DNA of 64,000 nucleotides from Guillardia theta CCMP2712 (Eukaryota; Protista; Cryptophyta). Made by a program: the position numbers and the translations under genes. Of this stretch, positions 779 to 39,960 are shown in pieces. The stretch lies in the NCBI RefSeq assembly GCF_000315625.1, contig NW_005434662.1, forward strand, positions 847,615 through 911,614. Direction: 5' to 3'. Position 1 is the stretch's first letter. Each line of letters starts with the position of its first letter. Below the pieces are notes generated by a model. That model ran no database searches. It had not been told where the DNA came from and saw nothing but the letters and a program-made list of their open reading frames with translations.

Positions 779-1973
779 ATGGAGGACTTCGCTATGCTCG
801 TGCACAAACTAACAGAACCTGCGAAGCAAGGCGATTCAGCGACGGTCCGTGTGCAGGGGGACTGAATGTCAAGCTGACCTGAATATTCAGGTTCGAGAAG
901 TTTTGCGCGATTCAAAGCGATTGCATTTTCTATGGCAACCGACGACGGTACAGCAAGAAGCCATCGACAAGTAAGAAACCAAGCAACATTGCTGGTATCA
1001 TGACTCTTCTTGAAGGTGCATCGACACTTGTCTACCTTCGGGGGGTGGGGAGCAGCATCTCAAGGGCTGGGTTGTCACCTCAGTCAATGAGTGGGGAGGA
1101 GATCAAGAGCGGATATTCCTTCTCACCGACAAGCGATGTTACCGTATAAAGTTTGACTTCGACTCGAAACAAGTAACTGCTTCCAAAGCCATCGAATTGG
1201 TGAGACACGACTACAACTTTCGAGGCCTCTGAGACGGATTTGATGTCAGAGTGAAGTCATACGGGTGGAGTATGGATCCTTCAAAGCAGCAAAAGCGTCC
1301 CTCACGACTTGGGTAACCTATTCGTGTTCCTTCATCCTCACTATATTCTTGTTCCTCCCGACCCTCCCTAATGATATCTGCCCCATGCATTACACTTCCC
1401 TTCCTCTCTTGTAAGACATGTTCAATTGCGATGGACAGGTGTGGAAGAAGGAGATAGAGCAGCAGCAGGTGAGCTGCCTTCTCCTGCTCTTGTCAAGCTC
1501 ACGACCCTCCTTCAGGGATTTCGCATCTTCACGCGAGAGTTGGATGGCAACAAGAGCATCAACGCGATCGCTCGCGAGCAGCTGCCGGCACTGCTGGGCA
1601 CTGAGCCAACGCCACAGGTGGAGATTGTCAGGGATCGTAATCAAGCAGGTTAAGGCTTGAGCAGGAGGAATTCTACCGCGAGTATAGAGCTTTCGGTGCA
1701 GAGGAGGAGCCGTGGAGGGAGGAAGTGTTCGCACAGGTGAGCATGGCTGTCCATTCGCCAAGGTGACTGGCGCACAGGAACTCGCTGCTGCCTTCATGGC
1801 CGCGTCGATTCTCAGCGGGGCAAACTTTGACGTCCGTCCAGCTGAGATGGACAAGGAAGTACCGGGTGGAGTTTTTTCAATGTGATGAGTCTCAGCTCGG
1901 GGGCTGTGCTGATAAGACGTTGGGCAGGTTCTATAACAGTTTGAGTCTTGGCAAATACTCCAAGACAGCTTGA
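779..1973 (+). CDS. Multi-exon hypothetical protein
   Basis: Short open segments joined by ~45-nt GT..AG introns (MEDFAMLVHKL..., ...LQGFRIFTRELDG..., FYNSLSLGKYSKTA*). No domain recognised; the start may lie further upstream. Confidence 0.5.
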
Positions 1974-2191
1974 GGCGTGTGAGAAACCAACGAACTATTG
2001 AAATGATGAAAACGAGCGAGAGGGCAAGCGGGGCGGGTTGTCAGCGATACCTGCGAAACGGGGCCTGAGGACATAAATACCGTGAAATGTTTGTGAATAT
2101 GAGTCAACTTTTGTTCGTTACGAAATATTCTTCTAAGCTTGAAACAATGATGGGAGGCTGAGCCTTCTTGGGCTGATTGTGAACAAACAAG

Positions 2192-4000
2192 TTAATCTAT
2201 CATCGCACCAACACACATTAAACTCACCGTCGCGAAATTTCCTTGATTCTCTGACGTGGAGATGGCAATCGTGGTTGTGTTTCGACAAACGTTTTGAAAC
2301 CAGCCGACACTCTCGGGGTTGTCGTCAACCATCAACGCCAGCTTATTTTCGGCCGAATATTCTCCAAGCACTCGCCCAAGGTATCCTCGTCCTTCTACTG
2401 TCTCGCAGAACAGGATGTGGGTGGAGTTGAGACCAGCATCACAGATTCCTGCTTCCCTCAGGGCCTCCACTACCACGCCCTCGCACTCGTCGTCCTTCCA
2501 AGACCCATGCGGGTACGTCTCGTTCACCACCGTGTGGTTCTCCATGTAGCGGGTCAAGGTGTCATGCCCCGAGTGAGGGAATTGAGTGACAAGAAACAGG
2601 TCGGTAGAAGCAGCGAGATGCATCAGGACGGGTCCCACGCCTTCAATCATCTGCAGGTGGGTCTCGCCTTGAAAGAAAACTTTCTGAATGTCAGATTCTT
2701 TGAAGACCGCATTGTTAGTCACGACCAGCACTCGTCGCCCTTTCAGCTCCTTCAGCTTCCTCGAGTCCATGCTCACTGAGTTCATCATGTCATGTACGTG
2801 CTGCGGTAACCCCTTTTGTGGCGCTGCGGAAGCCGAGTGGGTGCCCTTGCCGGCGAAGCCCAACGAGCGGAAGAGCTGGACAGACAACAACTTGATCATC
2901 GCAAAGATCCAGGAGGAGATGGAAGGGTAAGACCATGGCAAGTACGCCTGCAGATCGCTTGTCTCTTCACCTCCACCGCGCAGGCGCATTGATGAAGGTC
3001 TTTCTGCTGCTCGCGGCCTCACGCCCTGGACTGCTTCTGTGCCAGAACGAGCCTTCGGCTTGTTCTTCTGAGATTTCTTCTCTTCTTCTGCCTTGATAAA
3101 TTCCTTGAGCTGCTCTCGCTCAACCTGTCGAGCGTATCGATTGGTCACACGTCGGATGACAAGGAAAGGGTTGTTGGGATCTTTCTTCTGCTTGGTTAAC
3201 GCCTGCACCTTGGCTTTGTCACGGAGGAATTCGCCCAGCAACTTGATCATTTCATCTTCAGGCTTTCTTTTCTTGGTCTTCTTTGGCTTGCCCCCGGCGT
3301 CCGTCTGGACCGGCTTGAATCGCTCGTTTCCCTTGAAACCCAGCGACTTGCTGCCGTCTGTTATCATGGGCTTGGGGGCGCTTGCCTCGAGAAGCTGCTT
3401 CTTCTCTTCCTCGTACTTCTTGGCTGCAATCAAGTTCAACACATTCACCACAGTCTTGCGGACAATGCGCTCCTTCGCCTTCTCTGCTTGCACGTCCGGA
3501 TAAGCTTCGGAGACATTGCGCATGCGGTTCACTTCCGACCAGAACTTTTTGTGTAAGCGAGAGATGTCACTTCTCTTCTCGGTCGGGGCCTCGAGGTCAC
3601 TACCACGAGTGATAGAGATGAGGCCGGGTATCTTAGCTGACTTCCTTCGTTTGACCTCACCGCTCATAATCAATGCTGCGTCTTTGAGCATCTTATGCAT
3701 GTTACTTGTCCACGAGTCCTCCTCTTCCTCCGGGGCTAGAGAGTTGTTGAGACTCTCCCGAACCTCCTTCGAGAAACGTTCTGTGCCTGATGCATCCGAC
3801 CTATGCAAGGCTTGATTGTCCTTGCCCCTCGATATCCTAGCAGACCCCGAAGACGACAGAGGAGTCGATGATGGCATCTCACAACTCTTAGCGAAGGCCC
3901 TAGAGTCAACAAAGAGGAGGAGCAGCATGAGCAGAGCTCTAGCCCTAGTCGGCATCATCTTCCAGCCCCTTCTCCTTGACTTCATTGCTCTCCTTCCCAT
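2192..4000 (-). CDS. 602-aa single-exon protein: signal peptide, charged region, MRLRGG motif, hydrophobic segment, C-terminal plant-type PEX22-like domain
   Basis: The C-terminal DLFLVTQ..DDECEGVVVEALREAGI..ILFCETVEGR..VDDNPE resembles the plant PEX22 motif order (DLYL..DDESE..VL.ALE.AG..VLFCST..GR..IDTNPE). Hydrophobic N-terminus ALLMLLLLFV. Confidence 0.65.
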   Translation of the reverse strand: MGRRAMKSRRRGWKMMPTRARALLMLLLLFVDSRAFAKSCEMPSSTPLSSSGSARISRGKDNQALHRSDASGTERFSKEVRESLNNSLAPEEEEDSWTSNMHKMLKDAALIMSGEVKRRKSAKIPGLISITRGSDLEAPTEKRSDISRLHKKFWSEVNRMRNVSEAYPDVQAEKAKERIVRKTVVNVLNLIAAKKYEEEKKQLLEASAPKPMITDGSKSLGFKGNERFKPVQTDAGGKPKKTKKRKPEDEMIKLLGEFLRDKAKVQALTKQKKDPNNPFLVIRRVTNRYARQVEREQLKEFIKAEEEKKSQKNKPKARSGTEAVQGVRPRAAERPSSMRLRGGGEETSDLQAYLPWSYPSISSWIFAMIKLLSVQLFRSLGFAGKGTHSASAAPQKGLPQHVHDMMNSVSMDSRKLKELKGRRVLVVTNNAVFKESDIQKVFFQGETHLQMIEGVGPVLMHLAASTDLFLVTQFPHSGHDTLTRYMENHTVVNETYPHGSWKDDECEGVVVEALREAGICDAGLNSTHILFCETVEGRGYLGRVLGEYSAENKLALMVDDNPESVGWFQNVCRNTTTIAISTSENQGNFATVSLMCVGAMID

Positions 4001-24644: not shown

Positions 24645-27600
24645 ATGATCACGAAGATGCTCAAGATCGTCATCCTTCTGCTCCTCTGTCCTCCCTTGCA
24701 ATCAAGGGTACAACAGGCAGTCGGAGGTAGCAGCAGCACGTTCTCCAGGATCTTTCAGCTCCGGAGTCGCATACATCCGTGTAGAGGAGGAAACGACTGG
24801 CAGTCTGATAACGAGGAGAGCAGCTCAGGTGGAGGAAACGACTGGCAGTCTGATAACGAGGAGAGCAGCTCAGGTGATGGTTCTCCCTTTTCTCTCCCTT
24901 CTTTCCCTCCCTGCTCCCCTCATCTTATCGCATCAGGGGCGATGAGCAACGATTTGGAGTGGAAAGTGACGCGGCTCATGGAGATGGGAGCATCGAGGTC
25001 AATGGCAAAGGTCGCTGCAGAGCACTCCATCATATCATATTGACTCTTCACTGCAGAGGGCTGTCGCTCAGGATCCGCAAGGAGATGTCGAGGATGCCGT
25101 GAGGTGCTTGGAGTTGGCAGTGGTCTCAAGTGAGCTACGGCAGCAGATGGATCATCAGCAATCTCGACCAAGGAAACCAGTCAGTGACAGAACAAGTCCC
25201 GTCTCATGCTGTTGGACGAGCCAATGATTTGTTTTCTGTCTGCAGCAATCTTGACGACGATGCCAAAGATACAGCCAAAATTGCTTTCCCTGCTGTTCGT
25301 AATCCCTGGAAAGAATCTCGGACTTCATCGGAGCTCCTCGGAAGCTGTGCGTATTTGTTTCTGCCCTTGTGACTGTTCATCCTCCCTCTCTTCCTTCGCA
25401 TCTCCCTTTGGATTGCTCCTCTCTGCTGCTTCGATAGCTTTCCTTCCTCCTCCTTCCTCGATCTCCTCCTCCTCCTCCTCCTCCTCCTCCCTCCTCCTCC
25501 TTCCTGCTTCTCCTCCCTCCTCCTCCTCCCTCCTCCTCCTCCATCCTGCTCCTCCTCCTCCCCCCTCCTCTTCCTCCTCCCTCCTCTTCCTCCCTCCCCT
25601 TCCTCCTCCTCCTTCTTCCTCCTCCTCCTCCTCCTCCTCCTCCTCCTTCCTCCTTCCTCCTTCCTCCTTCCTCCTTCCTCCTTCCTCCTCCCTTCTACTC
25701 CTCTTTCCTAATCCTCCACCACCTCCTCGTGGCTCCATTCTCCATACTTTACTCCTTTACTTCTCTTCTTTCTTATTCAAACTCCATGCTAATGCAAGCA
25801 GCCGTTGCAGCTCCCGATTGCTTTCACCGTCAGCCAAGTCTCCGTCCGTTTGTCTTCTCCTTCCTGTCTTCATCTAAGTGCTTGCAGCAGGTGTGGATCC
25901 TACAGCCAGTCCCTTCACGTTCGGTTTGCATCGCAGAGTGGAAAGGAGGAGATCGTCGAACAGAGAGCCTCAGAAGCGGACGAGTACGCTCATTGCAAGA
26001 ATGAACGCGACATGTGTTTTCACCAAGAGCATGAGAGATGTCAATGTGCACTGGGGATTTGAAGTAGACATAGACATATTGAGAAATGTCTGCCAGGTGA
26101 GATGGGATGATATGATATCGAAGATTTCAGATGAACAATTGCTTCTTCGCAAACTCTAGGGTTTTGCGATGTTCTGATTGGATTTCAACTCCTGTTTCGT
26201 GTTGTAAACTACTTCATCCTCTTTAGAACGATTGACATTCTTGCAGATTTGCGAAGCTTATCAACTTATAGGCTTCGTGGACGGACCAGTCGCCCGTTTT
26301 CTTTGCAAATTCATCCCATCGGTATCCTGGAGGAAGCGCTGTTGGGCGCGAGTGTACCTTCAAAAATTTCTTCAAGAAAACGAAAGTTTGCAAGGAGAGG
26401 ATCCCAACGATGAGAAGGAGAGAAAGGAAGTGTGGCATTGCGACGTCAGACTATCAGGAGGCAGTAATGTTCGAGAGAGGGCGATCAAGGCCTTGAGACG
26501 GTCGGGACTACCTTTCACCATAGTGAATGCTACTCAAGAAATCTTTGACACCCCAATCGTGATCAATCGGACAGCTGGGACTGTACAAAACTCACAAGAA
26601 TCGCTGGAGGGTATCATTGATGATTTGCAGAATATTACAAGCTCCTTCAATCTCTCGCTTGTCTGCATGGAAACATTGCGGACCCTCGGGCTACGAACCA
26701 CTCTGTACGATTACCAGTTGCGAGGGATTAACTGGATGTTGAGTAGAGAATGTCAACAAGATGGGGATGGAGGAGAAGACGCAACCGTGAGCACTTGTAC
26801 AAACGCATCACTGAACAAACAAGACTGCAAACTGATCGATAGCGATGGGAACAGGAACAACCTCCACAGCCAACTCAAACCTGACAACGTCAGCAATCGT
26901 TCTAGCACGGATGAATTCGTTCACTCAGCTCTCTGGAGGAAAGTGACGGCGTATGGAGGGATATCTCACTACGAAAGCGTGATCGCAAAAGTCCGGAGGA
27001 CCTCACGACCTGAACCTATCTTCGGTGGAATTCTCGCAGATGATATGGGATTGGGTGAGCTGCCTGTTGAAAAACTGTCCCCTTCAAATGATGTGATGCG
27101 GTTCAAACAGGCAAGACAATACAGGTTCTGTCTCTCATCCTATCCAACGATCCCGATCGCGCTCTCCGAGCTGACAAGGCTGAAAGTGGATGCAAGCGAG
27201 CAAAGACACTGATTGTCTGTCCGGTTTCTGTCTTGACCAGCTGGGACTCGCAGATCGAAAGGCACATTGAGGATGGCAAGATGACCAAGATGGTACTCCA
27301 CTCGAAATACCTGCAAAGAAGTTGCAACGTGTCCTCACGCAGTCTGTCTGATTACGATGTTGTTCTTACAAGCTATGAGACCTTGAGGAATCTCTATCAA
27401 AGATGGCTCTTGAATCGCAATGCAACACATGTCAAGAAGGACGGTGAGTTTGCATGTGGATCCTATCATCTTTCATCACTCTTGTATTATACAGGACGAC
27501 GATCTTCGAAACAAGACATCATCGGAAACCAGAACATCGACATGTTCGACATGAGATGGTGGCGAGTAATCCTCGATGAAGCGCATTGGATCAAGAACAG

Positions 27601-29192
27601 GAAAACAAGAAGTCATCGAGCTTGTCTGCAACTGACGGCAATTAACCGGTGGTGTTTGACAGCAACGCCATTGCAGAATGATGTGGACGATATCCAGTCT
27701 CTCTTGCAGTTTCTTAGAGTGGAACCGCTCGACAAGTATTCTACCTGGCTGACATACGTCAAAAAGTGAAACCTCTTCTTTCCTCCTCCTCCTCCTCCTC
27801 CCTCCTCCTCTCACCTTTTCATTACGCTAATTCCGTTGGTTTTCCTTGACAGGCTCTTGAAGACGCAGGGTTCCCTCGGCATCACGCGACTGCGGGTGGT
27901 GATGCAGGCATTCTGCTTGAGGCGATCCAAGGCTCTCCTCGCTTCTTCTCTTCCTCCTCTCTCCATCCAGACTCACACTGTCCGTCTCCACGGCCATCAC
28001 CTTGACATGTACAACTTGCTCTTCGAGTCCGCCAGCTCTGTCTTCTTTGCCCTCGACGAGCATGGAGGAGCAGCGGTCATGAGGAGGTACTCCTCAGTAC
28101 TCGAGTGTATCCTCCGCCTCCGACAGACCTGCTGCTCCTCTCGCGGGGTCTCCCAGCAGAGGATGGAGAGGGCAAGGTACGTGTTGAGGTATATGGAGAG
28201 GAAGAAAGCGCAGCAGGCAGGAGACGAGGAGAACGCGACGAAGCTGCTCACGCGGGAGGAGGCGGACAAGATGTTGGAGAAGCTTTCTGGCAAGGAGGAA
28301 ACCATGGAATGTGTCGTCTGCCTGGATGACCTCGACGAGGAGACGAAGCGGGTAATTCGCTCCTGCTGTCACTGCTTCTGCGAGGACTGTGTCATGAAGC
28401 TCCTGCAACTTTCTTCCGGCGGAGACGCTGTCTGTCCCCTATGCCGCGGCAAATTTTCAAAGGGCGACGTGTTCTCGGTAGAGCAAACGCGGGAGGCTCA
28501 ACAGAACCTTGCTCGCAACGCATCCGACGAGGACGAGGACGGGGAGAGGCAGACGGATCGGGTGCAAGCGGAAGAGGAGGAGCGGGAAGAGGAGGAACAG
28601 AGGCTGAACCCCAAGATTCATGCGCTTCTCCTCGATGTGCAGGAGGCTCTGCAAGCAGACAAGACAGTCAAGTCTGTCGTGTTTTCCAACTTCCTCTCAT
28701 GTTTGGATGAGACAGAAAGTGCCTTGATCGCTGCTGGCATCCCCGTCTTTCGTATCGATGGCAAGACCAGCATCGTCCAGCGCCGGCGGCTGATACAAGA
28801 CTTCGACTCTTATCCTCAAGGCGCCCTGCTCCTCCTCAGCACCAAGGTCAGAATCCTTTCCATCTCCTTCCCCCTGCTCCCATCACCTCGCTCTGACCTC
28901 CAGCTAGGTGGGAGGCGTGGGGCTCTCGCTCACCATGGCGTCAAGAGCTTACATGATGGAACCATGGTGGAACGCGGCAGTTGACGAGCAGGCCATGCAT
29001 CGGCTCCACCGCATCGGGCAGACGCGCCCAGTCACCATCATCCGCTACATGTGCCAAGGGACCATTGAGCAGAAGATCATGGAGATGCAGGAGAAGAAAG
29101 ATTGGCTGGGGAAGGCGGCGATGATGAGGATGGCAGCCGACGAGCTGCTGGAAATGCGCCTGCGGCTGTTCAGGACGCTATTCCTGAGATAG
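24645..29192 (+). CDS. Rad5/HLTF-like SNF2 helicase with RING E3 ligase (UBA, HIRAN-like, SNF2_N, RING, HELICc), multi-exon
   Basis: LYDYQLRGINWM, GGILADDMGLG, VILDEAHWIKN, RWCLTATPLQN, RING CVVC..C.HCFC..C..CPLCR, and EPWWNAAVDEQAMHRLHRIGQ. UBA-like RLMEMGASR and HIRAN-like IGFVDGPVARFL. Linking the 5' exons to this gene is inferred. Confidence 0.88.
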
Positions 29193-29439: not shown

Positions 29440-32400
29440 GGCGGCTGCTTTGTTTTGCTTGAGGCACTTTTTACCTTCTGCCAGTAAATCCTTTATTCGG
29501 CGGCCTCCTAAACCAATAAAACCTAAAACCCTAAACCAAGCGCGAAGGCAAGCATAACAAAGCAGGAACAAGCTAAACCCGCTTGCACACAGCGCACAGC
29601 GAGAAGCTGCACAAACACACACAAAACACAAGCCCGAAAAGAACCAGCACTGCTGGCAGCAGGACGGATTTACTGGCAGAAGGTAAATGGCAACCGTCAG
29701 CAGACCCGGCATCGCCAGCCCAAGCGCGAAGCCGCGCAGACAAGCAGCCTAAGGGTCAAGCAATCAAGCAACAAGCAGCAGGAGCATGCAGGAGGAATAA
29801 CATCCCTTAGACGCGATACCCGGAGGCAGCCGACTGACCACTGTCAGTCGAGACGTCCGCTGCCGCCACAAAGCGGGCGGCCGCGGACGGAGAAAGGGCA
29901 GCCGCCGACAAGGAGCCGGCGTTGCCCGGGGGTCCGCCTGGGGCAGCGGACGGAGGGAGGCTGGACACAGGAGCACGGTACCGCTCGAGGTAGTCCTCTT
30001 CGCTAGCCTCGGAGTCAGCGGTAGCCGAAACCAACACCGTGGTGTCGAGCTCTCCGGAGGCACCCGACGTCACAGTGAGGGACGGAGACGCCTCGCCAGC
30101 TCCGCGCCAAGGCGAAGTGTTTCCCCCATCGGAGTCGGAGACCTCCGGCGAAGACTCCTCCTCGGGCGACTCGACAAAGTCCGAGGAGGAGCTGTCCTCG
30201 GGCTCGAGAAGTGCTTGTGCCCGCAAGGGCGTCATGCGCCTCGCACCCGGAAACAAGAGCGCCTCCAGTGTCAGCTGCATAGTGAGGCAATCCGTATTCC
30301 AGAGGGGCTGATAGGTGGCGGCGCGTTTGCGAGCTAAGACCTGAGCAGCAGGTCCGTACGCGGCCGCCAGCTTTGCTGACAGTGGTCAGTCGGCTGCCTC
30401 CGGGTATCGCGTCTGAGGGATTTTCTTCCTCCTGCATGCTCCTGCTGCTTGTTGCTTGATTGCTTGACCCTTAGGCTGCTTGTCTGCGCGGCGGGCTTCG
30501 CGCTTGGGCTGGCGATGCCGCGTCTGGTCATCTTGCGGCCATGAGGATGGGAGGGTACCTGCCGTCGAGGGATTTTATTCCTCCTGCATGCTCCTGCTGC
30601 TTGTTGCTTGATTGCTTGACCCTTCGGCTGCTTGTCTGCGCGGCTTCGCGCTTGGGCTGGCGATGCCGGGTCTGCTGACGGTTGCCAGCAGTGCTGGTTG
30701 TTTTCGGGCTTGTGTTTTGTGTGTGATTGTGCAGCTTCTCGCTGTGCGCTGTGTGCCAGGAGGGTTAGCTTGTTCCTGCTTTGTTTTGCTTGAGGCACTT
30801 TTTACCTTCTGCCAGTAAATCCTACTTTCGAGAACGAGAGTCCCCTCGAGCGTTCATCCCTCTTGCCATCTCGACGGACGGTACCCTGAGGCACTTTTTA
30901 CCTACTGCCAGTAAATCCTACTCCATCTGCATCCTGACACCCTCCGCTTCNNNNNNNNNNNNNNNNNNNNNNNNNNNNNNNNNNNNNNNNNNNNNNNNNN
31001 NNNNNNNNNNNNNNNNNNNNNNNNNNNNNNNNNNNNNNNNNNNNNNNNNNNNNNNNNNNNNNNNNNNNNNNNNNNNNNNNNNNNNNNNNNNNNNNNNNNG
31101 ACGCTGGAGGCGCTCTTGTCTGGTGCGAGGCGCATGACGCCCTTGCGGGCGCAAGCACTTCTCGAGCCAGAGGACAGCTCCTCCTCGGACTTTGTCGAGT
31201 CGCCCGAGGAGGAGTCTTCGCCGGAGGTCTCCGACTCCGATGGGGGAAACATCCAGAGTGGCGCCGACGATCGGCGCGGAGCTGGCGAGGCGTCTCCGTC
31301 CCTCACTGTGACGTCGGGTGCCTCCGGAGAGCTCGACACCACTGGGGTGCTTGCTGCTGGTCCGAGCTCGCCTGCTTCCTCCCCGGCATCAGTCGGGTCA
31401 CGCCGGTCCTTGGGCATTGCTGCGGCGTCGCCGCCGCCGTCACGGGCGGCTACCGCTGACTCGGCTACCGCTGACTCGGCTACCGCTGACTCGGCTACCG
31501 CTGACTCGGAGGCTAGCGAGGAGGACTACCTCGAGCGGTACCGTGCTCCTGTGTCCAGCCTCCCTCCGTCCGCTGCCCCAGGCGGACCCCCGGGCAGCGC
31601 CGGCTCCTTGCAAGTTGTCGGCGGCTGCCCTTTCTCCGTCCGCGACCGCACAGTGGTCAGTCGGCTGCTTCCGGGTATCGCGTCTAAGGGATTTTCTTCC
31701 TCCTGCATGCTCCTGCTGCTTGTTGCTTGATTGCTTGACCCTTAGGCTGCTTGTCTGCGCGGCGGGCTTCGCGCTTGGGCTGGCGATGCCGCGTCTGGTC
31801 ATCTTGCGGCCATGAGGATGGGAGGGTACCTGCCGTCGAGGGATTTTATTCCTCCTGCATGCTCCTGCTGCTTGTTGCTTGATTGCTTGACCCTTCGGCT
31901 GCTTGTCTGCGCGGCTTCGCGCTTGGGCTGGCGATGCCGGGTCTGCTGACGGTTGCCAGCAGTGCTGGTTGTTTTCGGGCTTGTGTTTTGTGTGTGTTTG
32001 TGCAGCTTCTCGCTGTGCGCTGTGTGCCAGGAGGGTGCTTGATTGCCTGACGCTTTGTTTTGCTTGAGGCACTTTTTACCTTCTGCCAGTAAATCCTATG
32101 CCTTCAAGTCCTCCTCGCTAGCCTCCGAGTCAGCGGTAGCCGAGTCAGCGGTAGCCGCCCGTGACGGCGGCGACGCCGCGGCAATGCCCAAGGACCGGCG
32201 TGACCCGACCGATGCCGGGGAGGAAGCAGGCGAGCTCGGACCAGCAGCAAGCACCCCAGTGGTGTCGAGCTCTCCGGAGGCACCGACGTCACAGTGAGGG
32301 ACGGAGACGCCTCGCCAGCTCCGCGCCGATCGTCGGGGCCACTCTTCCTCCTGCATGCTCCTGCTGCTTGTTGCTTGATTGCCTGACCCTTAGGCTGCTT

Positions 32401-34995
32401 GTCTGCGCGGCTTCGCGCTTGGGCTGGCGATGCCGCGTCTGGGTGCCAGCAGTGCTGGTTCTTTTCGGGCTTGTGTTTTGTGTGTTTGTGCAGCTTCTCG
32501 CTGTGGACTGTGTGCCTGCCGGTTCATCTTGTTCCTGCTTTGTTTTGCTTGAGGCACTTTTTACCTTCTGCCAGTAAATCCTATGTCACTCGAAGGGTGT
32601 CCCCCATCGGCAGCTTGTTCCTGCTTTGTTTTGCTTGAGGCACTTTTTATCTTCTGCCAGTAAATCCTATATCTATCGGACAAAAGAGACCTTTGGCGAA
32701 GACTCCTCGGGCGACTCGACAAAGTCCGAGGAGGAGCTGTCCTCTGGCTCGAGAAGTGCTTGCGCCCGCAAGGGCGTCATGCGCCTCGCACCAGACAAGA
32801 GCGCTTCCAGCGTCAGCTGCATAGTGAGGCGCTGATAGGTGGCGGCGCGTTTGCGAGCCAAGACACCATAGGATTTACTGGCAGAAGATAAAAAGTGCCT
32901 CAAGCAAAACAAAGCAGGAACAAGCTGAACCGGCAGGTACACAGTCCACAGCGAGAAGCTGCACAATCACACACAAAACACAAGCCCGAAAAGAACCAGC
33001 ACTGCTGGCACCCAGACGCGGCATCGCCAACCAGAGCGCGAAGCCGCGCAAAAAACCTCAGCAGCAGGTCCGTCATCAGGCACGAAGTGCCGACCAAACG
33101 CCGCATCCTCAAGAGGCATTGAGCGCTGAGCAATGATGTCCGCCAGATACCAGATGAAGCGGAGGGTGTCAGGATGCAGGGTACCGTCCGTCGAGATGGC
33201 AAGAGCATAGGATTTACTGGCAGAAGGTAAAAAGTGCCTCAAGCAAAACAAAGCAGGAACAAGAGGGATGAACGCTCGAGGAGGAGTAGTCATGGCATAT
33301 GCAGCGCGATGTTTGCGAATCTTCTCAGACGCTGCAACATGGAGGGCGTCGAGGTTGACCTCCCCCCACTTGGTCAGGTCGGCAGAGCTACCAATGTAAG
33401 GGTGGACATAGGATTTACTGGCAGAAGGTAAAAAGTGCCTCAAGCAAAACAAAGCAGGAACAAGCTGAACCGGCAGGCACACAGTCCACAGCGAGAACCT
33501 GCACAAACACACACAAAACACAAGCCCGAAAAGACCAGCACTGCTGGCACCCAGACGCGGCATCGCCAGCCCAAGCGCGAAGCCGCGCAGACAAGCAGCC
33601 TAAGGGTCAGGAGGCACTTTTTACCTTCTGCCAGTAAATCCGACAAATAAAATCCCTCAGACGCGATACCCGGAGGCAGCCGACTGACCACTGTCAGTCG
33701 NNNNNNNNNNNNNNNNNNNNNNNNNNNNNNNNNNNNNNNNNNNNNNNNNNNNNNNNNNNNNNNNNNNNNNNNNNNNNNNNNNNNNNNNNNNNNNNNNNNN
33801 NNNNNNNNNNNNNNNNNNNNNNNNNNNNNNNNNNNNNNNNNNNNNNNNNNNNNNNNNNNNNNNNNNNNNNNNNNNNNNNNNNNNNNNNNNNNNNNNNNNN
33901 NNNNNNNNNNNNNNNNNNNNNNNNNNNNNNNNNNNNNNNNNNNNNNNNNNNNNNNNNNNNNNNNNNNNNNNNNNNNNNNNNNNNNNNNNNNNNNNNNNNN
34001 NNNNNNNNNNNNNNNNNNNNNNNNNNNNNNNNNNNNNNNNNNNNNNNNNNNNNNNNNNNNNNNNNNNNNNNNNNNNNNNNNNNNNNNNNNNNNNNNNNNN
34101 NNNNNNNNNNNNNNNNNNNNNNNNNNNNNNNNNNNNNNNNNNNNNNNNNNNNNNNNNNNNNNNNNNNNNNNNNNNNNNNNNNNNNNNNNNNNNNNNNNNN
34201 NNNNNNNNNNNNNNNNNNNNNNNNNNNNNNNNNNNNNNNNNNNNNNNNNNNNNNNNNNNNNNNNNNNNNNNNNNNNNNNNNNNNNNNNNNNNNNNNNNNN
34301 NNNNNNNNNNNNNNNNNNNNNNNNNNNNNNNNNNNNNNNNNNNNNNNNNNNNNNNNNNNNNNNNNNNNNNNNNNNNNNNNNNNNNNNNNNNNNNNNNNNN
34401 NNNNNNNNNNNNNNNNNNNNNNNNNNNNNNNNNNNNNNNNNNNNNNNNNNNNNNNNNNNNNNNNNNNNNNNNNNNNNNNNNNNNNNNNNNNNNTCTTCTC
34501 AGACGCTGCAACATGGAGGGCGTCGAGGTTGACCTCCCCCACTTGGTCAGGTCGGCAGAGCTACCAATGTAAGGGTGGACCAACGTCACGTCATAGGGGG
34601 TCAGAGGATTTACTGGCAGAGGGTAAAAAGTGCCTCAAGCAAAACAAAGCAGGAACAGCTGCATATGCCATGACTCCTCCTCCTCGAGTGTTCATCCCTC
34701 TTGCGTGACATTCTTACCGTGCCCGAGTAAAACTCAGTTGCACAGCCGAAGGACGTACTCGCTCAAGTCGCAGGATAGGGTCTTGCAGTCTACCATCTTC
34801 GCTCATTTTTCTGAGCGAGGCTATAGGATTTACTGGCAGAAGATAAAAAGTGCCTCAAGCCTTTGGAAGTGCTTCCGCGGCTCATCTCACCCAGCAAGCG
34901 CTTGCAGTACTGCAGGTGGATTTGACTGACATCCTCGACACCACTAGCCTGATCCAGGCGATCAAGCACTTTTTACCTTCTGCCAGTAAATCCTA
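29440..34995. mobile_element. Nested patchwork of 5'-truncated copies and fragments of the CRE-like element, with 14 copies of its 3'-terminal motif
   Basis: Motif on + at 29461, 30792, 30888, 32066, 32551, 32637, 33611 and 34966; on - at 29666, 32871, 33210, 33411, 34606 and 34826. Most intervening DNA matches 36840-39260 in either orientation. Contains two N gaps. Confidence 0.92.
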
Positions 34996-37900
34996 TATTG
35001 CAAGCGCTACAGCTCCTTTGCGGGGACCGATGACCAAGGGTGGAGGATTCGGCAACACCTGTCACCCCTTTCTAGTCATCCTGCAGCTTTGAAGCTCTAC
35101 TGCCAACATATCCTCCAAGGGGTCCTTCTTGGCCGGATGCCGGATCTTCTTATTCCTGCCCTGTCAGCCATTCGTCGAGGAGGCAGATTTATTCCCCTCT
35201 CCAAGGGAGCTGATAAACCTGGTCTCCGGCCAATTGTCATCGGTTCTGCACACCGTCGACTCGCGACGAAGCTTGCTTTGGCAGGGATTCGCTCATTTCT
35301 TGACCAGCACTTCCTCTCGTCTCACCCTCGAGCGATTCAGTTCGGGCTCGATCGAGACGGCTGTCTGAAGTTCTCGCAAACCGCGTCAGCGCTCCTGCCC
35401 CTTCACGCTCGCGGTGATGATGAGGATGTTGCCAACCCCACAGTGCTGGTGAGTTTGGATGCAAAGAACGCCTTCAACTCCCTCGACCGCCAGGCTCTCT
35501 TCGATGCAATCGAGGGACGTGCGAGTCGCGACTACTTTGATGGGAGCATCACTGAAGGCGCAAGCTTGCCCTCTTGCGAGCATCTCCGTTTGTTCGCCTC
35601 CTACCTCTCCAGCTACTATGGAGACTCTGCTGACCTTCGACTCTTTCACAAAAGTCAGTCAGCCTCCGTTCAGTGTACCTCGGGCGTCTGTCAGGGCGAT
35701 GTCCCCTCCAGCGTGTTTTTCTGCCACAGTATCCACCCCCTGCTCCTCCATATCGCAGAGCTTTTTCCCTCTGTTCGAGTCTTGGCCTATGCTGACAACG
35801 TCGTGCTTGTCGGTCCACTCGAGGATGCCGTTGCAGCTACGTCCGCTATGAAGAAGTACATGGTGGCTGATCTGAAGCTAGAGATTCAACCTCGCGAGTC
35901 GAAAGTTTACATCCCCTCCTGGCATCAACACCCTGATCTCTCGCAGCTGAAGAAGAGCCTTAAGCGCCGTCTCAAGACTCAACTTCTTCACTTCGAGGTC
36001 GTCACTGGCGGGATTACACTTGGCGGCCTGCCTATCGGCACGGATGGATTTCATGCTAGTCAGCTCCGAGCGAAGGTTTCTACCCTCAACGAAGAGCTCT
36101 CAAAGCTCGGGCTCGTCCAGCATGGCTTCATGTTCAAGACGCTGGTGAGGGCGAGCCATCTCCAGAAGCTGCGCTTCTTCCTCCAGGGGTCATCTCCGTT
36201 TCTCCCGCGGGTCCAATCACAGATTCGTCGCTTTGACCTCTCTGTCCACCTGGCGCTTGAGAAATACCACCGCTGGCCTTCCTCGCAGTACCTCGCCGCG
36301 CATCCCGACCTGCTAGAGTTTGCGAGGTTCAAGCGGGAGCTTCCGCATAGTCGGGGAGGGGACGAGTTCACGCCCTCTGAGGGTCTACACCCCGCTGTTT
36401 ACTATACGGCTATCGCTCGCTTCCTCGCTTGGTACTCTGACCAGCCCATGTCCCGGACCTTGCCCTCTCCTCATAGCCTGGACGTTCACTGCTCGAGATC
36501 TCTCCGTGCCCAGAAGCATCCTCTGGCGACCTTCTTCGTTGAGGCGCACGACTTCGTTCATAATGCTGGAGCGATCCTCTACCGTCGTGTCAAGGCTCCT
36601 GCACCGGCTGCAGATGGCGCGGCGATCCCACCTGCCCCGGCTGCTGTGCCTGATGACGCAGGACGCCCCCCGGCATCTGTGGTACACATCCCTGGTTTGC
36701 GCGCTCTCGTCGACTCGTCTCATGAGCACTTCATTCCTCCCCCTGCGCAGCGAAATGTGACCCCTCTTGTCATGCGCGTCTTCCCTCGCCATGTGCATGC
36801 TCGCGCTGCGCTGACCGATCAGCAGCGTGATATCCTCACCTTGCACAGCCGCAGGACACACTCGCTCAAGTCGCAGGATAGGGTCTTGCAGTCTACCATC
36901 TTCGCTCATTTTCCTGAGCGAGACCTGAGCCACTCTCCGATGCGAGTCTCGAGCTACTACCCCCTCAAGGCCTTCCCGCACCGCTATGCTCAGATGCTCG
37001 ACTGCTATCTCCATGGCATGCCGATCTGCCAGTGTCCGACGGAATGTGATGGATGTCAGCGCGAGCTCGATCCCTCCGTTGCTGCACATCATCTCCAGAC
37101 CTGCAAACGCCGATCCTCCAAGCTTCCCACGGCGCATGACAACCTTACTCGTACGATTCGGTCGATGCTGAACGAAGCTGGTCTTCAGAGCGTCATCGAT
37201 ACAGTGGGGGATCCTCGTTCTCGACGGCAGGTACCCTCCCATCCTCATGGCCGCAAGATGAAGGGCGATATCCACATTCCTGGAATCCGCGATCGAGGGT
37301 CCGAGCAGTACGAGGGCTTGATGGCGGACGTGACGTTGGTCCACCCTTACACGGACGTTCACTGCTCGAGGTCTCTCCGTGCCCAGAAGCATCCTCTGGC
37401 GACCTTCTTCGTTGAGGCGCACGACTTCGTTCATAATGCTGGAGCGATCCTCTACCGTCGTGTCAAGGCTCCTGCACCGGCTGCAGATGGCGCGGCGATC
37501 CCACCTGCCCCGGCTGCTGTGCCTGATGACGCAGGACGCCCCCCGGCATCTGTGGTACACATCCCTGGTTTGCGCGCTCTCGTCGACTCGTCTCATGAGC
37601 ACTTCATTCCTCCCCCTGCGCAGCGAAATGTGACCCCTCTTGTCATGCGCGTCTTCCCTCGCCATGTGCATGCTCGCGCTGCGCTGACCGATCAGCAGCG
37701 TGATATCCTCACCTTGCACAGCCGCAGGACACACTCGCTCAAGTCGCAGGATAGGGTCTTGCAGTCTACCATCTTCGCTCATTTTCCTGAGCGAGACCTG
37801 AGCCACTCTCCGATGCGAGTCTCGAGCTACTACCCCCTCAAGGCCTTCCCGCACCGCTATGCTCAGATGCTCGACTGCTATCTCCATGGCATGCCGATCT

Positions 37901-39280
37901 GCCAGTGTCCGACGGAATGTGATGGATGTCAGCGCGAGCTCGATCCCTCCGTTGCTGCACATCATCTCCAGACCTGCAAACGCCGATCCCGGAGTCCAAG
38001 CTTCCCACGGCGCATGACAACCTTACTCGTACGATTCGGTCGATGCTGAACGAAGCTGGTCTTCAGAGCGTCATCGATACAGTGGGGGATCCTCGTTCTC
38101 GACGGCAGGTACCCTCCCATCCTCATGGCCGCAAGATGAAGGGCGATATCCACATTCCTGGAATCCGCGATCGAGGGTCCGAGCAGTACGAGGGCTTGAT
38201 GGCGGACGTGACGTTGGTCCACCCTTACATTGGTAGCTCTGCCGACCTGACCAAGTGGGGGGAGGTCAACCTCGACGCCCTCCATGTTGCAGCGTCTGAG
38301 AAGATTCGCAAACATCGCGCTGCATATGCCATGACTACTCCTCCTCGAGCGTTCATCCCTCTTGCCATCTCGACGGACGGTACCCTGCATCCTGACACCC
38401 TCCGCTTCATCTGGTATCTTGCGGACATCATTGCTCAGCGCTCGATGCCTCTTGAGGATGCGGCGTTTGGTCGGCACTTCGTGCCTGATGACGGACCTGC
38501 TGCTGAGGTCTTGGCTCGCAAACGCGCCGCCACCTATCAGCGCCTCACTATGCAGCTGACGCTGGAAGCGCTCTTGTCTGGTGCGAGGCGCATGACGCCC
38601 TTGCGGGCGCAAGCACTTCTCGAGCCAGAGGACAGCTCCTCCTCAGACTTTGTCGAGTCGCCCGAGGGGGAGTCTTCGCCGGAGGTCTCCGACTCCGATG
38701 GGGGACACCCTTCGAGTGGCGCCGACGATCGGCGCGGAGCTGGCGAGGCGTCTCCGTCCCTCACTGTGACGTCGGGTGCCTCCGGAGAGCTCGACACCAC
38801 TGGGGTGCTTGCTGCTGGTCCGAGCTCGCCTGCTTCCTCCCCGGCATCGGTCGGGTCACGCCGGTCCTTGGGCATTGCCGCGGCGTCGCCGCCGTCACGG
38901 GCGGCTACCGCTGACTCGGCTACCGCTGACTCGGAGGCTAGCGAGGAGGACTACCTCGAGCGGTACCGTGTTCATGTGTCCAGCCTCCCTCCGTCCGCTG
39001 CCCCAGGCGGACCCCCGGGCAGCGCCGGCTCCTTGTCGGCGGCTGCCCTTTCTCCGTCCGCGGCCGCCCGCTTTGTGGCGGCAGCGGACGTCTCGACTGA
39101 CAGTGGTCAGTCGGCTGCCTCCGGGTATCGCGTCTGAGGGATTTTATTCCTCCTGCATGCTCCTGCTGCTTGTTGCTTGATTGCTTGACCCTTAGGCTGC
39201 TTGTCTGCGCGGCTTCGCGCTTGGGCTGGCGCTGCCGCGTCTGGGTGCCAGCAGTGCTGGCGTCTGGGTGCCAGCAGTGC
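34861..39280 (+). mobile_element. Non-LTR retrotransposon with restriction-like endonuclease (CRE-like); 5' end missing, disrupted
   Basis: RT motifs AG.D..GW..HL, LRPIVIG, QFG, SLDAKNAFNSL, SGVCQGD..S and YADN; zinc knuckle CDGC..HHLQTC; RLE HD..KGDI..DVTLVHP..K.RKH..FIPLAISTDG. ORF stop at 39137, followed by 3' UTR. Confidence 0.92.
36480..38229 (+). repeat. Internal tandem duplication (36480-37351 and 37353-38229) of the linker, CCHC and first part of the RLE
   Basis: Near-identical copies with an 873-bp in-frame period. The second copy has a 5-nt insertion (CGGAG, ~37990) that shifts the frame. Confidence 0.93.
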
Positions 39281-39960
39281 TCGCTAGGAACACGGTACCG
39301 CTCGAGGTAGTCCTCCTCGCTAGCCGGGCAACGCCGGATTCTGACCTTGGTGCTGAGGAGGACCCTAAGTGCCGACCAAACGCCGCATCCTCGAGCCAGA
39401 GGACAGCTCGAGTCGCCCGCCGGCCCGAGGAGTGTTCGCCGGAAGTCTCCTACTCCGATGGGGGACTTTGAAACATCCGGAGTGGAGCCGACGAGCTCAC
39501 TGCAACGTCGGATGCCTCCGGAGGCACTTTTTACCTTGTAGCCGCGTAGACAAGCAGGCTGAGGGTCAAGCAACAATCAGCAGGAGGGGAGGGACTTCCG
39601 AGCTGAAACTCCCTTAGACGCGATACCCGGAAGCACTGATCCGACTGATTCCTGCTTTTTTTTTGCTTGAGGCACTTTTTGAACAAGCTAAACCTGCATG
39701 CACACATCGCACAGCGAGAAGCTGCACAAACCGTGGCACACACAAAACACAAGACCAAAAGTAACCAGCACGTTTTGTGTGTTTGTGCAGCTGCATGCGG
39801 GTTTATCTAATCCGACTGAACATTGTCAGTCGCCGCCGCAAAGACAAGTCAGCCAGAGCTCTGCAGTCTCACCGACGAGGTGAGACGCAGTGACATGAGG
39901 ACGGAAGCGCTCATGAATGTAGAGGAAGACTCGGAGGTTGGAAGACATAGGATTTACGGG
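39281..39960. mobile_element. Older, diverged scrambled fragments of the same retroelement family
   Basis: Degenerate matches to the ORF end and 3' UTR in both orientations; partial terminal motifs at ~39521, ~39669 and ~39950. Confidence 0.8.

Follow-up and report, generated by a model that had tools for sequence, protein, structure and literature searches.

Very short 5'-truncated insertions in Guillardia theta point to abortive retrotransposition of an R2-like element within its own nests

Non-LTR retrotransposons that carry a restriction-like endonuclease (RLE), such as R2, R4, NeSL, CRE, HERO and Utopia, have one ORF that encodes, in this order, a reverse transcriptase (RT), a CCHC knuckle and a PD-(D/E)XK-type endonuclease. 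They lack a poly(A) tail and use target-primed reverse transcription (TPRT), with 5' truncation, untemplated bases and junction microhomology, at single targets such as 28S rDNA, snRNA genes or spliced-leader genes. Truncated, 'dead-on-arrival' copies of L1, R1 and R2 have a fixed 3' end, a variable 5' end, target-site duplications (TSDs) and 5' microhomology, and their typical length is hundreds of bases. Work on Drosophila R1 and R2 has described the junction features named for the RLE elements (PMC2718515). Zepp and Zepp-like LINEs of Chlorella, Coccomyxa and Chlamydomonas insert into their own copies and build nested clusters of 5'-truncated elements, proposed as centromere markers with one cluster per chromosome (PMC3446292, PMC8226300).

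Here we analyzed a 64,000-nucleotide stretch of Guillardia theta CCMP2712 DNA (the window), in which four micro-insertions of an element's 3' terminus had been predicted. A literature search found no paper on G. theta non-LTR elements. The element shares its domain order, the missing poly(A) tail and its junction features with the RLE group, and the fixed 3' and variable 5' ends with dead-on-arrival copies. Like Zepp, its insertions were confined to clusters of its own copies, as seen in loci chosen via the RT gene. Unlike the RLE relatives, it has no single target, and unlike Zepp, which belongs to the L1 clade and has an AP endonuclease and a poly(A) tail, it is R2-like, carries a restriction-like endonuclease and resides in a cryptophyte.

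The element and its protein

Judged from its sequence, the element is an R2-like RLE non-LTR retrotransposon, with a single predicted ORF for RT, CCHC knuckle and restriction-like endonuclease, and without a poly(A) tail. Close relatives are gene models of G. theta CCMP2712 itself, and outside this species the closest ones are about 25-39% identical. A single-sequence search of the PDB gave no match and a family profile was needed, for which R2 proteins ranked best (E = 3e-20), ahead of L1 ORF2 (E = 3e-8). The Pfam RVT_1 match was weak (E = 9e-6, below the cutoff), and the protein atlas returned only unnamed RVT_1 clusters. A third stretch aligned to R2, weak in itself (i-E 0.15), covers the CCHC knuckle (C..C..H..C) and the D..D..K positions of the endonuclease, and these motifs are conserved in alignment A1 of the protein family. 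No Exo_endo_phos (AP endonuclease) match was found in the element protein, and Pfam detected no N-terminal zinc-finger or Myb domain in the ORF, whose true start is uncertain. R2 in the strict sense inserts site-specifically into 28S rDNA; the targets found here are diverse and lie in the element's own sequence.

Four micro-insertions and their hosts

In the window, the element forms a nest that is interrupted by two assembly gaps (30951-31099 and 33701-34493) and that holds the four insertions, with TSDs and spacings read from the sequence:

29445..39800, both orientations: nest composed of a mosaic of element pieces, in which the 3' terminus occurs 14 times
34968..35000, + strand: micro-insertion 1, the last 26-28 nt of the terminus, then 7 extra nt (TATATTG), with 2 nt of 5' microhomology; TSD CAAGC (34963-34967 / 35001-35005), spacing 38 bp
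33206..33259, - strand: micro-insertion 2, a terminus piece of about 55 nt, microhomology of at most 5 nt; TSD CAAGAG, CTCTTG in element sense (33200-33205 / 33260-33265), spacing 60 bp
30889..30926, + strand: micro-insertion 3, a terminus piece of about 32 nt with additional bases; TSD CTG (30886-30888 / 30927-30929), spacing 41 bp
29659..29687, - strand: micro-insertion 4, a terminus piece of 22 nt with 7 extra nt, within a 3' UTR fragment; TSD TGGCA (29654-29658 / 29688-29692), spacing 34 bp

All four inserts contain the 3'-terminal motif with its final CTGCCAGTAAATCC. In the window this motif occurs 14 times, always within 29478-34997, compared to an expectation of zero in shuffled sequence. 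A metagenome scan with the same motif yielded four matches, all of them chance hits in unrelated sequence. At several terminal copies in the nest the flanks are non-collinear (for example 34606-34657 and 34826-34860), so that not all junctions represent a simple insertion.

Uninterrupted versions were found for each of the four sites, and both the coordinates and the duplications agree with the original prediction. Sites 2, 3 and 4 are contiguous in paralogues within the window: the flanks of insertion 2 (33055-33205 and 33260-33407) match 38509-38359 and 38364-38217, the flank of insertion 3 (30841-30888) matches 38339-38387, and site 4 matches 30683-30700. Site 1 is uninterrupted in ENA contig L008 (646-732), which comes from an independent metagenome. 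Moreover, Logan contigs from four runs of four studies contain the joint 34962->35001, the empty form of site 1 (38 letters skipped, 5 shared), as well as the joint 33199->33260, the empty form of site 2 (60 skipped, 6 shared). The inserts are not part of the family consensus, since other copies lack them. As predicted, removing the 38 bp of insertion 1 restores the reading frame, and in L008, whose ORF is intact, the peptide SLIQAIKRYSSFAGTDDQGWRIRQHL is found at residue 75.

Since the region is repeat-rich and gapped, we considered whether it had been mis-joined, with chimeric reads posing as inserts. The two gaps would fit this explanation, as would the result for the filled junction of site 1, for which a word search of public runs listed no run (3 words were sampled, and contigs lose rare variants); likewise, neither the Logan contigs nor this word search yielded an independent read or contig crossing a filled junction. 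Mis-assembly, however, does not create short perfect duplications flanking a fixed element terminus, and the same anatomy recurs at eight other loci, including an independently assembled metagenome contig. We thus regard the chance of an assembly artefact as close to negligible.

The sequences that received the insertions were placed on a coordinate ruler, used for mapping only and made by joining three stretches of natural sequence (L008 336-3286, window 38458-39146 and window 32345-32581):

34859..37351, + strand: host copy of insertion 1, ruler 269-2723, 5'-truncated and ended at 2723 by the next copy
37353..39260, + strand: further 5'-truncated copy, ruler 1852-3754, nested in the host of insertion 1 with the same orientation and splitting it at ruler 2723
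32107..33407, - strand: host fragment of insertion 2, ruler 2711-3446, endonuclease and C-terminal coding part
32611..32674, + strand: fifth clean micro-insertion, not in the original prediction, a 57-nt terminus piece with 7 extra nt; TSD ATCGG (32606-32610 / 32675-32679), paralogue 30122-30160
32345..32586, + strand: 237-nt 5'-truncated copy nested in the host fragment 32107-33407, TSD CACTC

Starting at ruler 269, the host of insertion 1 is missing its 5' end together with about 47 codons, and the nested copy at 37353-39260 accounts for an apparent 877-bp tandem duplication within the 986-aa ORF. The host fragment of insertion 2 holds four nested terminal copies, namely insertion 2 itself, a 180-nt copy (32871-33050) and the 57-nt and 237-nt copies, and the hosts of insertions 2 to 4 are all short fragments. 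Because the hosts were truncated at their 5' ends, split or short fragments, insertions 1 to 4 struck copies that were already dead. The proposal that insertion 1 knocks out the RT ORF, and that the element disables its own copies, is accordingly overstated.

Lengths and junctions of terminal copies

We extended the analysis to the window plus eight other loci (204 kb), the latter being pieces about 20 kb long of eight scaffolds or contigs, one of them the independent metagenome assembly; all loci outside the window were picked via the presence of the RT gene. Across this sample we observed 96 non-duplicate copies with a common 3' end, whose lengths form a continuum between 12 nt and 2.2 kb (median 65 nt). 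The majority (60 of 96) are below 100 nt, and five exceed 1 kb. The four micro-insertions are thus no special class, and represent the short end of a continuous length range. Compared to the RLE relatives, the truncation is far more extreme, and most products stay below 100 nt, unlike truncated L1, R1 and R2 copies with the lengths commonly quoted for them.

The abundance of inserts of 12-60 nt, together with some excess of 5' ends near 47-52 nt, might suggest a separate short non-autonomous element, or a stable small RNA from the 3' UTR, mobilized in trans. We consider this very unlikely, given that the lengths extend without a discrete class from 12 nt to more than 2 kb, that all inserts are collinear with the UTR of the autonomous element, and that shuffled sequence folds just as well as the terminal 64 nt (-6.3 kcal/mol, z 0.06), lending no support to a terminal stem-loop.

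For 21 events a paralogous empty site was available, allowing us to define the junctions directly. TSDs measured 3-14 bp (median 6), unlike those of RLE elements in their variability, and 0-12 extra bases (median 7) were present at the 3' junction. Microhomology of at least 2 nt occurred at the 5' junction in 9 of the 21 events, as opposed to an expected 1/16 per event (p = 2e-6). The same insertion pattern was seen on eight other scaffolds or contigs, including the independent metagenome assembly. In a few events, a target deletion of 8-29 bp replaced the duplication. Head-to-tail micro-copies (for example L005 14797-14929 and L008 3280-3367) are compatible with template jumping.

Extra bases and microhomology, the target deletions and the non-collinearity of some junctions would also be in line with break repair, in which terminus cDNA or templated patches are caught at random double-strand breaks, either endonuclease-independently or in a polymerase-theta-type reaction. 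In contrast, the clean 3-14 bp duplications of the 21 events require staggered nicks, and a single fixed 3' endpoint is common to all inserts, where patches from nearby DNA would end arbitrarily. Such an origin therefore appears extremely improbable. TPRT typically leaves TSDs, extra bases at the 3' junction and microhomology at the 5' junction, and the data accordingly favor real target-primed insertion, as originally proposed. We conclude that the inserts are very probably abortive, extremely 5'-truncated retrotransposition products of the R2-like element of G. theta, located almost exclusively within its own nests.

Such products could arise as follows. The endonuclease would nick one DNA strand, and the freed 3' end would serve as primer for copying the element RNA from its 3' terminus, often after the addition of a few untemplated bases. 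This terminus ends in CAGTAAATCC and a short tail that varies, with the forms TAT, ATT, ACTAC, GTC and GAC. Synthesis would usually halt, or the template be lost, after only tens of nucleotides; a second-strand cut 3-14 bp away would then give rise to the TSD, and the short cDNA would join the upstream end, often via 2-5 nt of microhomology. New events fall almost only in existing nests, so that copies interrupt each other.

The target sequences vary between events and have none in common, and they lie at varied positions along the element itself. On the ruler, bins 2701-2800 (7 events), 2001-2100 and 3601-3700 seem enriched, yet by a rough estimate fail the correction for 39 bins. The first TSD base was C in 12 of 21 events, a marginal preference. 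Of the TSD length distribution and the cleavage logo that the original prediction had envisaged, the former could be obtained for the window and the eight loci, whereas the latter is not justified.

Insertion into the element's own nests

In the sampled loci, chosen via the RT gene, insertions are confined almost only to nests of the element's own fragments. Priming-side flanks lay in element DNA in 71 of 92 cases, compared to a share of element DNA of 31% among the sampled bases (p = 4e-20). An element flank was present in 84 of 94 events, the remaining 10 also lay within nests, and no event was found in flanking genic DNA of the window and the eight loci. Insert and host had the same orientation in 50 cases and opposite orientations in 23.

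As the loci were chosen via the RT gene and selection purges genic insertions, the preference could partly reflect survivorship. A rather unlikely, if possible, scenario is active targeting of the element RNP to the element's copies in the genome, which would maintain one self-renewing nest per chromosome as a safe sink or centromere core in which mostly abortive inserts, tens of nucleotides long, accumulate. Steering could rely either on base pairing between the sense RNA and the antisense strand of copies already in place, a model that the 50:23 excess of same-orientation inserts would fit, or on recognition of centromere-like chromatin. If so, this cryptophyte would possess an R2-type counterpart of Zepp that evolved convergently.

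In sum, the insertions represent ordinary retrotransposon biology at an unusually small scale, and the mechanism is not new. In a little-studied eukaryotic lineage, the loci provide a clean natural junction catalogue of an R2-like element that is not site-specific, with its TSD lengths, the untemplated bases added at the 3' side, microhomology and what look like template jumps. The data indicate that most integration attempts of the G. theta element end after tens of nucleotides, and its self-nesting clusters, which resemble those of green-algal Zepp, could aid in locating centromeres in cryptophyte assemblies.

Micro-insertions and their empty sites

Direct reading of the sequence showed that the original prediction had placed all four micro-insertions (#1-#4) correctly. 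They lie within a nest at 29445..39800, a mosaic of fragments of a non-LTR retrotransposon in both orientations, and carry the 3'-terminal motif of this element. At #1 (34963-35005), two CAAGC repeats enclose 33 nt, comprising the last 26-28 nt of the motif, which ends CTGCCAGTAAATCC, and then TATATTG. The window contains 14 matches to the motif, always within 29478-34997, and shuffled sequence none.

Features of the nest in window coordinates (TSD, target-site duplication; ruler, element coordinates from L008 336-3286, window 38458-39146 and window 32345-32581 joined)
Insertion #2: CAAGAG duplicated at 33200 and 33260
Insertion #3: CTG duplicated at 30886 and 30927
Insertion #4: TGGCA duplicated at 29654 and 29688
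32611-32674: fifth clean micro-insertion, TSD ATCGG
32345-32586: 237-nt terminal copy, TSD CACTC
33407 to 32107, minus strand: host fragment, 736 bp of element, with four nested terminal copies
37353-39260: second 5'-truncated nested copy, ruler 1852-3754, same orientation as the host of #1

When the window was compared with itself, paralogous copies turned up in which the sequences flanking #2, #3 and #4 run together without a break. In the case of #2, 38509-38359 and 38364-38217 match 33055-33205 and 33260-33407, their overlap being the 6-bp duplication; for #3, 38339-38387 and onward match the flanks, and for #4 the match is 30683-30700. The window holds no paralogous empty site for #1, and this site is uninterrupted in the ENA metagenome contig L008, whose intact 947-aa ORF carries SLIQAIKRYSSFAGTDDQGWRIRQHL at residue 75. 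For both #1 and #2, Logan contigs from four runs of four studies contain a joint skipping exactly the insertion (38 bp with 5 shared letters and 60 bp with 6, respectively), at a depth well above that of the surrounding unique sequence. Filled junctions were absent from the contig tables of public runs, and a search with three sampled words returned no run for that of #1, contigs being prone to drop rare variants. Given these empty-site versions, the inserts lie outside the family consensus and are not common to every copy. The four micro-insertions are confirmed as an observation, and the interpretation attached to them is partly supported.

The predicted knock-out of the RT ORF by #1 stands in one respect, its 38 bp causing a frameshift; the copy hosting it, however, was defective in any case. 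This copy starts at position 269 of the ruler (roughly L008 position 604), lacking the 5' end together with about 47 codons, and stops at position 2723, where the second truncated copy is nested. An apparent 877-bp tandem duplication within the 986-aa RT ORF (36480-38229) is the junction of these two nested 5'-truncated copies (ruler 269-2723, then 1852-3754), which makes this ORF a chimera. The host of #1 had either died before the micro-insertion or would have been dead without it; the hosts of #2-#4 are short fragments.

Several further features were observed in and around the nest. A degenerate telomere-like tract of CCTAAACC / CCCTAAACC units at its left edge (29508-29540) adjoins a 47-nt terminal copy (29445-29491), and just upstream, at 26232-28984, is a split helicase of the SNF2 family that carries a RING finger and Helicase_C (Pfam). 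Two UTR copies contain, between two duplicated 125-bp UTR segments, an inverted 42-bp piece (30528-30569 and 31799-31840) identical to RT-coding 37220-37261 and 38098-38139. At 39649-39771, the 3' UTR of the nested copy lacks the terminal motif and stops at an inverted junction between ruler 3828-3858 (plus strand) and 3830-3748 (minus strand), which looks like a fold-back rearrangement.

Terminal copies and junction anatomy

We sampled eight more RT-encoding places, seven G. theta scaffolds and L008, bringing the total to 204 kb excluding L008. Together with the window, they contain 98 copies of the terminus, or 96 once duplicated segments are removed. Recurrence in nine sequences, one from an independent assembly, makes an assembly artefact barely credible. 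The copies form an unbroken length range between 12 nt (the detection floor) and 2.2 kb (median 65 nt; 60 copies below 100 nt, five above 1 kb), and the predicted 34-60 bp events simply occupy its lower end. This continuity, together with a terminus that folds no better than shuffled sequence (z 0.06), speaks against a discrete short RNA or SINE-like element, which we regard as very improbable. At L005 17046-18404, a further RT-encoding locus, copies end in AAATCT rather than AAATCC, with flanks that do not match the ruler, and probably belong to a sister subfamily sharing the nest.

Paralogous empty sites, matched on both flanks, were available for 21 events. Their TSDs span 3-14 bp (median 6), and 0-12 extra bases (median 7) separate AAATCC from the duplicated target. 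Among all copies, long and short alike, these bases most often begin TAT (43%), other recurring starts being ATT, ACTAC, GTC, GAC and GTA. At the 5' junction, at least 2 nt were assignable to either element or target in 9 of 21 events, against an expected 1/16 per event (p 2e-6). No clear target motif unites the 21 events; 12 of them have C as the first duplicated base, a marginal excess. Capture at breaks, without an endonuclease, is very unlikely in view of the 21 clean duplications and the fixed 3' endpoint. A few events deleted 8-29 bp of target without duplication, and some micro-copies stand head to tail (e.g. L005 14797-14929, L008 3280-3367), the arrangement expected from template jumping, in which synthesis passes from one RNA onto the 3' end of a second. 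All these features match those described for R1 and R2 of Drosophila, where junctions show microhomologies of 1-5 nt and non-templated bases, and off-target R1 insertions 3-14 bp duplications (PMC2718515).

Element identity and landing sites

The ORF of the element owning the terminus matches RVT_1 weakly; its close relatives are confined to G. theta CCMP2712 gene models and two environmental contigs, more distant ones sharing 24-39% identity. Against solved structures, the family profile scored best with R2 retrotransposon proteins (E 3e-20; LINE-1 ORF2p, 3e-8), and a further aligned stretch takes in the CCHC knuckle of R2 together with the D, D and K positions of the endonuclease. The ORF has no AP-endonuclease domain and the element no poly(A) tail. 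By these sequence criteria, the element is classed as R2-like with a putative restriction-like endonuclease. R2 proper was rejected because there is no rDNA target. One distant RT-protein relative, P0085 (1577 aa), has a ubiquitin C-terminal hydrolase domain (Pfam UCH, E 4e-29) in its N-terminal part. Lake-water, runoff and aquatic metagenomes (runs X1, X3, X4, X7, X8, X15, X17) contain 60-68% of the words of the G. theta element region, a share equal to that in single-organism-labelled runs.

Priming-side flanks fall in the element itself in 71 of 92 cases, the element making up 31% of sampled bases (p 4e-20), a preference to be read with loci having been picked via the RT gene and insertions in genes being removed by selection. 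At least one flank is element in 84 of 94 events, the other ten also lying inside nests, and none was found in roughly 130 kb of sampled flanking genic DNA. Inserts share their host's orientation in 50 cases and oppose it in 23 (p 0.002), a bias that template-jump arrays may inflate; clean events give 15 and 6 (p 0.08). Apparent hotspots on the element fail multiple-bin correction by rough estimate.

Very probably, these copies arise by abortive target-primed reverse transcription, which would make short inserts; the second strand would then be cleaved in a staggered manner and the ends joined with the help of microhomology, existing nests being strongly preferred as landing sites. The G. theta element resembles R2-group elements in its predicted enzyme type and, in behaviour, the Zepp and Zepp-like L1 elements of green algae, which form clusters of nested, truncated copies that have been proposed as centromere markers, one per chromosome (PMC3446292, PMC8226300).
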